Below, in pieces: positions 52,901-59,995 of a DNA stretch of 64,000 nt. Position 1 is the first letter of the stretch; the number at the start of each line of letters is the position of its first letter. Below the pieces are notes generated by a model. It searched no databases. It saw only the letters and a program-made list of their open reading frames with translations, and was not told where the DNA came from. The DNA is from Macrostomum lignano (taxonomy: Eukaryota): the NCBI GenBank assembly GCA_002269645.1, contig NIVC01000587.1:62001-126000 (forward strand). Direction: 5' to 3'. Both the position numbers and the translations under genes were made by a program.

Positions 52901-55900
52901 TCCCAGATCCTCAGTTGCCGGGCCAGCCTCCCAAATCATCAGTTTCTGAGCCAGCCTCCCAGATCCTCAGTTGCCGGGCCAGCCTCCCAAATCATCAGTT
53001 GCTGAGCCAGCCTCCCAGATCCTCAGTTGCCGGGCCAGCCTCCCAAATCATCAGTTGCTGAGCCAGCCTCCCAGATCCTCAGTTGCCGGGCCAGCCTCCC
53101 AAATCATCAGTTGCTGAGCCAGCCTCCCAGATCCTCAGTTGCCGGGCCAGCCTCCCAAATCATCAGTTGCTGAGCCAGCCTCCCAGATCCTCAGTTGCTG
53201 GGCCAGCCTCCCAGATCATCAGTTGCTGGGCCAGCCTCCCAGATCCTCAGTTGCCGGGCCAGCCTCCCAATTCATCAGTTGCTGAGCCAGCCTCCCAGAT
53301 CCTCAGTTGCCGGGCCAGCCTCCCAAATCATCAGTTGCTGAGCCAGCCTCCCAGATCCTCTGTTGCTGGGCCGCCACTTATTCCGTCTATAGATACTTGT
53401 GATGGGTCATTCCGGGTTCATTAGGTTAGGTGGTATTTTTTTGTTATCAGATCGGATCTAATTAAGCTTAATGGCATGCAGCATCTGAACACTGGCGGTG
53501 TAAATTATTGAACTCAGTGATGGGGGTTTCAGATCTGCAGGCTCAATCATATTATTCATTCAACAATGCCCTCCTCAATATAAGCCTAGGCCAGCTTCAT
53601 TTCATCGCCATTGTTAACGCAGATCCCAGTTGTGTGTTTTTTCAACCCAGTGCGAGCTCAGCCCTGCTTAGAGGGTCTGAGGGCAGTGTGGGGGTGACTG
53701 CTCTAATCGCCTACCCTGAGAGCGGTGATGAGTCACTCGCGCTTGCCAGCTGCGATAGCTGGGAATGCCAGAATCGGCACTCATATTGATTTCCCGTCCA
53801 TACTCTAGAAAAGATAGAATACAATGAGTGCCTGACGTAATAGCTTTTAGTCTTTGAAGCTGTAGTTTCTGCTGTAACAGTTATGCTGAAGTGGCTCGTT
53901 AGGCAGTGGAAATTTTTGCTTCTGCAGCATCAGATCCCCACTACTATTCATAATTATTTATTCTATTGTTGCGTGACAAAACTCATTCACGACACTAGCT
54001 GGGGCTTGAATTGTAATTTCTGGCTCATCTACACTAGCTCACCTGCTAGTGCAAGTGTGGGAATTAATTGTTCACCCAACCTTTCCTCTCAAGTGACAGT
54101 GACCCGAAATGACCCTCGCCTTCCGTAGTATACTCCCAGTTGAACACATCCTTTTCGTTGATTTCTCCCGATTTTCTATAAAAAATGGTAGAAGAAAAAT
54201 TAAGCATCCAATTTTTCACACCATTATTTTCAGACTTGGAATGCGACCTCCAGGAAGCTCAAGATTGGCTAGATACAGCTAATGGTCTGTATTATTTTCA
54301 AGTATTATTAACAGCACTGTTTTAGTATTTTCTTTATAATCGTGTTTATGTTTATGTTCATTTTATTATTCAGAAAACCGTATCAAAGTGCCGGCGGATG
54401 TAACCGTGCTGACCTCGGAGCAGAAGACCGAGTTGTTGCACTCTGTTCAGGTAATTTTCTTCTTTTTATGATGCTTTTTATTGTCGATACTTTTTTATCG
54501 CACTACTATCAGTAGGCCGAAGTATTGTAACCACAGATACTAAAATAACTAGATAGGCCACTCAGCACATTTAACGTGTAAGCTACTTTCAGTTCAGTAG
54601 TAAGTTAAACAGAAGCATTTTAATGTATTTTAAAGCCAAGGCTCAATTTATTGGCTCTTACCCCCAGCTTAAACCATCCAACTGAGCCTTTCCACACTAC
54701 CCTCGCCCCGCCCCAATTTTTATTGCCTTCCTCGGAATTCCAGCCTAAAGCTGCCATGTACATTTCAGTGGACTGGCTAATGTACATTATTGCTGAACCA
54801 ATTAGCAAGTTGTTTACGCCTGCAAGCTTGGGCTTCTAAACTTATCAAAGTCATTTCAGCTGCCGTAATTTTTATATAAAAGCTTACGTATTCTTCTTTG
54901 CTACTGAACTGAAAGTAGAAAGCTGTTTTACTAAGTATATGTGCCTGAGTGGCCTATCTAGCTATTTTAGTATCTTTGATTGTAACTGAAAACTTATCCT
55001 AGTAGTGACGATTGTCTCCATATTTAATTTAGCTACTTTGGAAAATTTGGAAAATTTAGCCTGACTACTATCAGTAGGCTAGTATTGTACTTATAGATCT
55101 TGTTTAGGCTTTTATTGACGATTAAAATATTTGTGAAAAATTGATTCCAATAGGCGTAAATAAACACGTGTTTATTTTGAGATAAATTCGATTAGTTGCA
55201 TTCTCGAAGCAGACAAGTGCAAGTATAATAAAATGTTTCATAATGCATAACACGCTTTTTTTTATTCAGTCTGTTTGTTAATCTCGGGCAAGAATGTTGA
55301 ATCAATAAGCCGTATGCCATGTTTTAGAGTTGTAATTTTTGTTTGTTATATTGCTAATGTATTAAGCTTGAGAACTGATTCTCAATAGTCAACTAGTGAA
55401 ATTGTCACTAACTATCATCACTTGAACATGCCGCTGCCTCCGCTAGTCCATAGCAACTGCTGCTGGCTATGCTGCAGGCCTCTGTATAGGAACTCCTCCA
55501 TTGTCTCCGCCGCCGCGTACCGGCCCTGGCGCCTGTACAGGGCCGCCATGTTTCGCACCGTTGTGGCCACGGTTTGAGCGTCGGCGCCCGGCGCCAGACT
55601 GCAGTCCAACGGTTGCCTGGCGCCTCCTCCGCTACGTTTGGCGCCAACAGGCGCGCCTGACTCGCGTTCCTCGGCCAGCTGCCAGATTGTTCGGCCGTTC
55701 TCGTCGGGCAGGTACGCCCTAGTAAGCACGTCCTTGTACAGCTGGGCGGCGCTGTCGTATTTGCCCTGCTTGACGAAGGCCGATGCCAGATTGTTCTTAG
55801 TCTTGGCCACGTTGACGTCGCCTTCGCCTAGCTTAGTCTCGTAGATCTCCAATGCTCGCCTGTAATAACTCTCTACTTCGCCGTATTTGCCCTGATTTTG

Positions 55901-59995: not shown

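Follow-up and report, generated by a model that had tools for sequence, protein, structure and literature searches.

An antisense kinesin light chain gene within an intron of a probable member of a spiralian nesprin-like KASH family in Macrostomum lignano

Introduction

Does the enclosure of a kinesin light chain (KLC) gene in an intron of a gene for a possible KLC cargo protein reflect a functional tie between the two, or is it an outcome of gene relocation alone? This question is raised by a stretch of 64,000 nucleotides from the flatworm Macrostomum lignano (GenBank assembly GCA_002269645.1, contig NIVC01000587.1, positions 62,001 to 126,000 of the forward strand), referred to below as the window, in whose numbering all positions are given. 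In a first-pass annotation made from the DNA letters, a complete KLC gene had been placed on the minus strand, inside a 5.3-kb intron of a gene for spectrin-like triple helices on the plus strand (the host gene), and it had been proposed that, if the host encodes a KASH or other cargo protein, adaptor and cargo are physically interlocked and possibly co-regulated. We report here that the nesting is confirmed, that the host is largely rightly called nesprin-like at the level of its family, and that the nesting itself is most likely neutral.

Nesprin-1, -2 and -4 and UNC-83 are bound by KLC via an LEWD or EWD motif, a tryptophan-acidic (W-acidic) element located in a disordered membrane-proximal region, and a change of WD to AA abolishes KLC binding by these KASH proteins (PMC12581424, PMC11310688, PMC9537699). 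Genes that house a nested gene make up 17% of the human and 12% of the mouse set; the introns concerned are mostly long, and there is no strong strand bias. Host and nested genes are usually functionally unrelated, and transcriptional interplay can be shown by such pairs (PMC11694760).

Results

The KLC gene lies within one intron of the host gene

The KLC coding sequence (58173 to 55418, minus strand) consists of three exons with two GT-AG introns between them, 341 and 924 bp long, and encodes a protein of 496 residues, which is identical over its full length to UniProt entry A0A1I8JCJ5 ('Kinesin light chain', M. lignano). It is located wholly inside a single intron of the host gene on the opposite strand, at a distance of 967 bp from host exon E4 and 1,591 bp from exon E5, and the exact boundaries first given for this intron (54451-59764) were borne out by the splice sites (Table 1).

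On the host side, six exons (E0 to E5) form an in-phase chain with AG and GT sites, yielding an open frame of 302 codons without a stop. Five of the six exons listed in the first-pass annotation are found again in E1 to E5; its sixth, downstream exon could not be validated, and the upstream exon E0 was added in this analysis. The spliced 244-residue peptide encoded by E1 to E5 was subjected to an exhaustive HMMER search against 1.84 billion representative proteins. This search recovered two M. lignano entries, A0A1I8JE90 (E=4e-125, 98% identity) and A0A1I8H658 (E=4.5e-69, 99% identity), and 12 more distant proteins with E-values from 4e-11 to 7e-4. A match to a NACHT/CARD protein (E=3e-5) was taken to be a spurious helical match. 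The homology to proteins of M. lignano and of other phyla rules out that the plus-strand exons are chance open reading frames (ORFs). The distant homologs are collinear with the host peptide across every exon junction, including that of E4 and E5, with 175 residues in Nucella set against 175 in the host, so that the claimed in-phase chaining of the exons holds as well. Both annotated M. lignano models splice across the KLC-bearing intron. We conclude that the KLC gene is nested in the host intron as observed at first, and that this observation stands well above chance.

A word-indexed protein search, run with the host peptide and with the C-terminal part of A0A1I8H658, returned nothing. Since it missed both M. 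lignano proteins despite 60-70 consecutive identical residues, and the exhaustive search recovered them, its results were treated as false negatives and not as evidence of absence.

Judged against the exon chain, public annotation of the host gene needs correction. A0A1I8JE90 contains E1, E2, E4 and E5 and starts at an in-intron ATG (45459); A0A1I8H658 contains E2 and E5 and apparently reads through an intron in mid-protein. Both skip the 51-nt exon E3, in which the family's best-conserved motif, DLECDL..WL, is encoded; this motif is kept in Nucella, Aplysia, Lymnaea and one further homolog, and its Tubulanus counterpart reads DLEADL. Adding E0 raised the phmmer score to every homolog. When upstream host exons were searched for by homology in the window, E0 alone was found, and the first 5' exon or exons were not. 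At the other end, the host gene continues past position 64000, the window encoding only the N-terminal motif and two spectrin repeats; the 3' two-thirds of the gene are known via the imperfect public models, possibly from another copy. In the shared exons, A0A1I8JE90 and A0A1I8H658 differ from the window at 2-3 residues, and they may represent another copy or allele.

The host belongs to a family with spectrin repeats and KASH tails

Homologs of the host were found in the gastropods Nucella, Aplysia, Lymnaea and Elysia, in Octopus, in the nemertean Tubulanus and in two further assemblies; those of Lymnaea, Elysia and Octopus bear the UniProt name 'KASH domain-containing protein'. The spectrin-like triple helices claimed for the host were assessed by profile and by predicted fold. 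Four homologs match the Pfam Spectrin profile (PF00435) at 31-44 bits (cut-off 29.9), as does a fifth, in segments that align with the host and cover both repeats. The AlphaFold prediction improved from a pLDDT of 64 for the host peptide as a single sequence to 84 with a 13-sequence family alignment, exceeding 90 over most of residues 78-300, and the alignment-based model contains six helices arranged as two three-helix bundles. Foldseek comparison of this model with the PDB gave tandem spectrin repeats (spectrin, plectin, alpha-actinin, nesprin-2G) as the top 12 matches, with a probability of 0.99-1.0 and E-values of 3e-3 to 8e-2. One host repeat superposes on utrophin SR1 with a TM score of 0.77 and a root-mean-square deviation of 2.7 A. 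Taken together, homologs and predicted fold bear out the triple helices.

In all five homologs whose C-terminus is complete (Tubulanus, Lymnaea, Octopus and two others), a hydrophobic, putative transmembrane segment is followed by a KASH tail ending in ...LRYVRGPPPV, ...LHYVNGPPSI, ...LRYINGAPPI or similar; the models for Aplysia, Nucella and Elysia have different ends. The Pfam KASH profile scored 25.7 bits for Tubulanus and 26.4 bits for Lymnaea, above its cut-off of 23, and 12-19 bits for the three others. A PDB sequence search with the KASH tail of one homolog gave no match. On the strength of these sequence and model comparisons, the tentative label 'nesprin-like' is largely right when read at the family level: the host is, in all likelihood, a member of a spiralian (flatworm, mollusc, nemertean) nesprin-like KASH family. 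By extension from its homologs, the M. lignano host protein itself would end in a KASH domain.

A conserved tryptophan-acidic pair is a candidate kinesin-binding site

Residues 638-676 of A0A1I8H658 (PEDLDQLWDHYQPQPYAVGVDEAAEERLDDSHLQWEADQ) align with Tubulanus residues 1071-1109 (ESFSETAWDNYQDLPYQTISEGGIEEKLDDSHLQWEVSA), within surroundings that are acidic, of low complexity and otherwise unalignable between the two species. The aligned segment contains a pair of motifs, reading '..LWDHYQPQPY..' and '..LDDSHLQWEAD..' in M. lignano and 'AWDNYQ' and 'LDDSHLQWEVS' in Tubulanus. Related forms of this WDxYQ ... LxWE pair were found in Lymnaea, Octopus and two further homologs. The M. lignano candidate peptide spans EDLDQLWDHYQ...LDDSHLQWEADQ; it was taken from A0A1I8H658 and maps outside the window.

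Counted back from the C-terminus, the first tryptophan of the pair is 491-500 residues away in the five full-length homologs and 401 residues away in A0A1I8H658. This spacing suggests that A0A1I8H658 misses its last 90-100 residues, which is roughly the size of the transmembrane segment and KASH tail.

Given the conserved WD/WE pair and the LEWD/EWD precedent in KASH proteins, a WD/WE-based interaction with KLC is plausible. By analogy with that precedent, we regard the pair as a candidate site through which the host family may plausibly bind KLC.

The cargo pocket of the flatworm KLC is conserved

Human KLC1 (PDB 9pmb) aligns over its residues 9-474 with residues 8-478 of the flatworm KLC (E=1e-153). 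Both have an N-terminal region of heptad repeats and, after it, six TPR motifs, a layout alignable end to end with KLC1 and KLC2, and identity across TPR1-4 to the human proteins (PDB 9pmb, 3nf1, 3zfw) is about 70-80%; the Pfam profiles TPR_10, TPR_12 and TPR_1 were matched. The flatworm protein differs from human KLC1 and KLC2 in its short C-terminus and its divergent TPR5-6 loop, as does its gene in being located inside another gene. The equivalents that had been proposed for the KLC2 pocket residues R251, N287 and R312 were verified as R253, N289 and R314, with the 36/25 spacing kept and with locally identical surroundings (YRDQ/HRDQ, LNNL, IREK). This implies, at the level of sequence, that the residues of the W-acidic cargo pocket are conserved in M. 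lignano.

At its 5' end, the annotated protein A0A1I8JCJ5 has five extra N-terminal residues (PSSAE) that start directly after the AG at 58189, which indicates an exon boundary or a trans-splice (spliced-leader) acceptor at this point; about 39% of M. lignano genes are trans-spliced (PMC5730564). A GTAAGT donor at 59013 makes a short 5' untranslated exon possible at about 59014-59036, that is, up to the position to which the KLC gene had been extended in the first-pass annotation.

The coding region of the flatworm gene has two introns only, whereas in Tubulanus the KLC coding sequence is divided into at least 8 parts spread over more than 13 kb. One intron, that after 'IREK', is apparently common to both, from which it follows that the flatworm gene lost introns and is not a retrocopy.

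The nesting is not shared with four other spiralians

The position of the E0/E1 intron is conserved in Tubulanus, and that of the E4/E5 intron in both Tubulanus and Lymnaea; the intron that houses the KLC gene is therefore ancient. Its equivalent spans 2.3 kb of the Tubulanus gene and 23.8 kb of the Lymnaea gene. Annotation of the host-homolog loci in Tubulanus, Lymnaea (a 60-kb gene), Elysia (87 kb) and Octopus (160 kb) revealed no gene inside them, and tblastn with the flatworm KLC gave nothing at the loci of Tubulanus, Lymnaea and Elysia. Synteny, named in the first-pass annotation as a check, thus spoke against its idea of an interlocked pair, since the KLC-in-host arrangement is missing at the homologous gene in all four species. 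We conclude that it is not an old conserved feature.

On a 32-Mb chromosome of Tubulanus polymorphus (OZ123226.1), the KLC gene occupies 21.13-21.18 Mb and is separated by 7.6 Mb from the host homolog, which occupies 28.76-28.80 Mb. Human KLC1 and SYNE3 (14q32) are presumably linked too, as are KLC3 and SYNE4 (19q13), at distances that we take to be similar. The co-location in Tubulanus hints at an old linkage of KLC and small nesprins.

Compared with other host and nested pairs of animals, such as LRRTM genes in alpha-catenin genes and 2mit in timeless2, the present case is alike in that a complete coding gene lies antisense in one long intron. It is unusual in that the products of KLC and host come from families of known binding partners. 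Unlike the LRRTM/catenin pairs, the nesting of KLC was checked across taxa and not found to be conserved.

Other features of the window

The window consists of nuclear DNA of M. lignano and is repeat-rich, with many minisatellite arrays and two retroelements; its features are collected in Table 1. It also carries a Ufm1 gene, a UBE2T-like gene and an MSH6-like gene with PWWP and MutS domains, the last extending over about 21 kb. The introns of all genes in the window are packed with minisatellites with units of 16-56 bp and up to 97% identity (42185-45190, 52552-53372, 56136-56737, 60239-60714 and many before 40000), among them a 3-kb array of a 38-bp unit (42185-45190) in the host intron between E0 and E1. 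Translated minisatellite frames yield long spurious ORFs.

Table 1. Positions of host, KLC and other features in the window
Feature	Position	Strand	Remarks
Host exon E0	40794..40967	+	newly added; conserved 'LW..I....Y..LMD..I.E.C' motif; 3' boundary at same place in Tubulanus
Host exon E1	45495..45674	+	predicted start of spectrin repeat 1; 100% identical to A0A1I8JE90
Host exon E2	52301..52493	+	predicted remainder of spectrin repeat 1; splice sites, homolog alignment
Host exon E3	54234..54284	+	51 nt; predicted start of spectrin repeat 2; conserved in homologs; skipped in both annotated models
Host exon E4	54374..54450	+	ends CAG|gtaatt
Host intron holding the entire KLC gene	54451..59764	+	5,314 bp; position conserved in Tubulanus and Lymnaea
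Host exon E5	59765..59995	+	predicted remainder of spectrin repeat 2; acceptor gacag|GCA, donor TCG|gttagt
Weak out-of-phase likeness to next annotated host exon	60065..60112	+	'...GAESG', then stop; remnant or chance
KLC coding exon 1	57910..58173	-	ATG at 58173; N-terminal part, 88 codons; donor CAG|gtaagc
KLC coding exon 2	56885..57568	-	heptad-repeat region and TPR1-3; R253, N289, R314; acceptor acgcag|GTG, donor AAG|gtaagc
KLC coding exon 3	55418..55960	-	TPR4-6 and C-terminus; acceptor ttccag|ATT; stop TGA 55420-55418
KLC 5' region	58174..59036	-	AG at 58189; GTAAGT donor at 59013; possible short 5' untranslated exon
Candidate KLC polyadenylation signals (three AATAAA)	55111..55271	-	154-304 nt past stop; consensus match only
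52-bp minisatellite in KLC intron 2	56136..56737		11.4 copies; repeat scan
Ty3/gypsy-type retrotransposon ORF	46104..49817	+	gag-protease-reverse transcriptase-RNase H-integrase; 1238 residues without stop, apparently intact; in host intron E1-E2
Second retroelement ORF	61779..64000	+	740 residues (reverse transcriptase and start of RNase H); runs off window; not host exons
471-residue open frame	22398..23810	-	flanked by exons of the MSH6-like gene (about 17777 and 25193)

The Ty3/gypsy ORF is flanked on both sides by a 21-bp minisatellite (about 45740-45950 and 50269-50962) and by the same 11-residue peptide. These identical arrays and peptides suggest long terminal repeats that contain tandem repeats. 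The second retroelement fills the space where more host exons might be sought; the ORFs after 61779 were rejected as host exons, being those of the retroelement. Pfam and PDB searches with the 471-residue ORF gave no match, and this frame may be a second antisense nested gene of the window, inside an intron of the MSH6-like gene.

Discussion

The reading that best accounts for these data, to which we assign a probability of roughly 80%, is that the KLC gene of M. lignano is nested in a member of a spiralian nesprin-like KASH family, that the host protein carries a KASH tail and binds KLC, and that the nesting as such is neutral. In this family, a conserved N-terminal motif and two spectrin repeats are followed by a long disordered stretch that holds the acidic WD/WE pair, by further helical repeats and finally by a transmembrane segment and KASH tail, an ending that the flatworm protein would share. 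The host protein would recruit kinesin-1 with its WD/WE motifs bound by the TPR groove of KLC, in the way nesprin-1, -2 and -4 and UNC-83 use LEWD or EWD, and an adaptor-cargo relation between KLC and the host protein is plausible by sequence and analogy. The KLC gene, for its part, would have relocated into a large and ancient intron of a repeat-rich genome in a neutral, lineage-specific event.

The family resembles the short isoforms of nesprin-1 and -2, nesprin-4 (SYNE) and UNC-83 in its predicted spectrin-repeat rod, in the C-terminal transmembrane segment and KASH tail of its homologs, and in a disordered, membrane-proximal 'adaptive' region with a W-acidic-like motif, to which corresponds, on the KLC side, the conservation of the TPR pocket; for M. 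lignano itself, KASH tail and KLC binding would follow from sequence and analogy. It differs from the named nesprins in that no sequence similarity to them was detected in this analysis, its mollusc, nemertean and M. lignano members being recorded under no names other than 'uncharacterized' or 'KASH domain-containing' protein, and it has AWDxYQ ... LxWE in place of LEWD.

Several points weigh against this reading. The host peptide itself had no match to PF00435 even at E<=10, so that the profile check named in the first-pass annotation succeeded with the homologs only; its best Pfam match was Syntaxin with 17.3 bits, below the cut-off of that family, and a PDB sequence search with it was uninformative. 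No Foldseek match of the host model reached E<=0.001. The spectrin assignment is consequently one that homologs and a predicted fold suggest. The exon chain is deduced from sequence. The strict pattern [LM][DE]W[DE], for which a scan had been proposed, occurs neither in the M. lignano models nor in any homolog, the W-acidic-like WDxYQ ... LxWE pair being what the family conserves. The KASH profile, named as a further check, was matched above its cut-off in Tubulanus and Lymnaea, and neither of the annotated models A0A1I8JE90 and A0A1I8H658 contains a transmembrane segment or KASH tail; that A0A1I8H658 is truncated is suggested by motif spacing in the sequence. The nesting comparison represents the flatworms by M. 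lignano alone. Finally, a 19-bp satellite and a retroelement lie downstream of E5, where the next annotated exon is not in phase, and this copy of the host may be altered.

The last point is the core of an explanation that we consider unlikely, namely that the KLC gene sits in a damaged or decaying duplicate of the host, either a pseudogene or a gene for a short two-repeat protein, in a species with recent duplications. The annotated sequence after E5 is missing from the window except for the weak out-of-phase remnant with a stop at 60113, followed by the satellite (60239-60714) and, from 61779 onward, the retroelement; the few residue differences from A0A1I8JE90 and A0A1I8H658 would fit another copy or allele, differences of assembly or gene model being possible too. 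However, the frames of E0 to E5 are intact, their splice sites are canonical, and they differ from the annotated copies at no more than 2-3 amino acids. Large repeat-filled introns are normal in this window, as in the MSH6-like gene, and the missing exons may lie beyond 64000.

Distinctly doubtful is a host that lost its KASH tail or never had one, which would make it a cytoplasmic spectrin-repeat relative and neither a nuclear-envelope nor a LINC protein. The tail-less annotated models would agree with this, as would the C-terminal 446 residues of A0A1I8H658, in which, the motif aside, nothing significantly similar to the pre-KASH regions of the homologs was detected. Yet both models have visible flaws as predictions, namely skipped exons and what is probably an intron read through, the motif spacing fits a protein model short of its last 90-100 residues, and KASH tails terminate five out of five homologs with complete C-termini.

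That the nesting is functional, with antisense KLC transcription coupled to the cargo-receptor gene by transcriptional interference or shared chromatin activation and kept by selection, is very improbable, for the binding of the two families in mammals and C. elegans, the conserved KLC pocket with its W-acidic-like counterpart in the host family and the interplay possible in nested pairs (PMC11694760) are offset by the empty host homologs of four spiralians in which the same intron exists (in Lymnaea at 23.8 kb), by the frequency of nested pairs with mostly unrelated functions (PMC11694760) and by the scanning of many windows, in which an occasional coincidence of this kind is expected. Functional interlocking of adaptor and cargo thus has no support here and some evidence against it. 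We would likewise give little credence to two further readings, either a nesting selected in macrostomids that ties expression of KLC and KASH receptor together, reciprocally or jointly, or the extreme end of an old linkage of KLC and small nesprins. The nesting is most likely a neutral, lineage-specific outcome of gene relocation and probably not a regulatory device.

In genomic terms, the locus is one more nested gene pair of the ordinary sort. It stands out in that host and guest come from families known to bind each other in kinesin-1- and LINC-dependent nuclear positioning. Should the nesting be functional after all, it would provide a rare example in which shared genomic space serves to regulate a motor adaptor together with its cargo receptor. 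The analysis yields a corrected model of a flatworm nesprin-like gene, with the new upstream exon E0 and the 51-nt exon E3 skipped by both public models. It also brings to light a spiralian KASH family in which the KASH tail follows a sharply conserved tryptophan-acidic pair at a fixed interval, and this pair provides a directly testable candidate kinesin-binding site in a flatworm capable of transgenesis.

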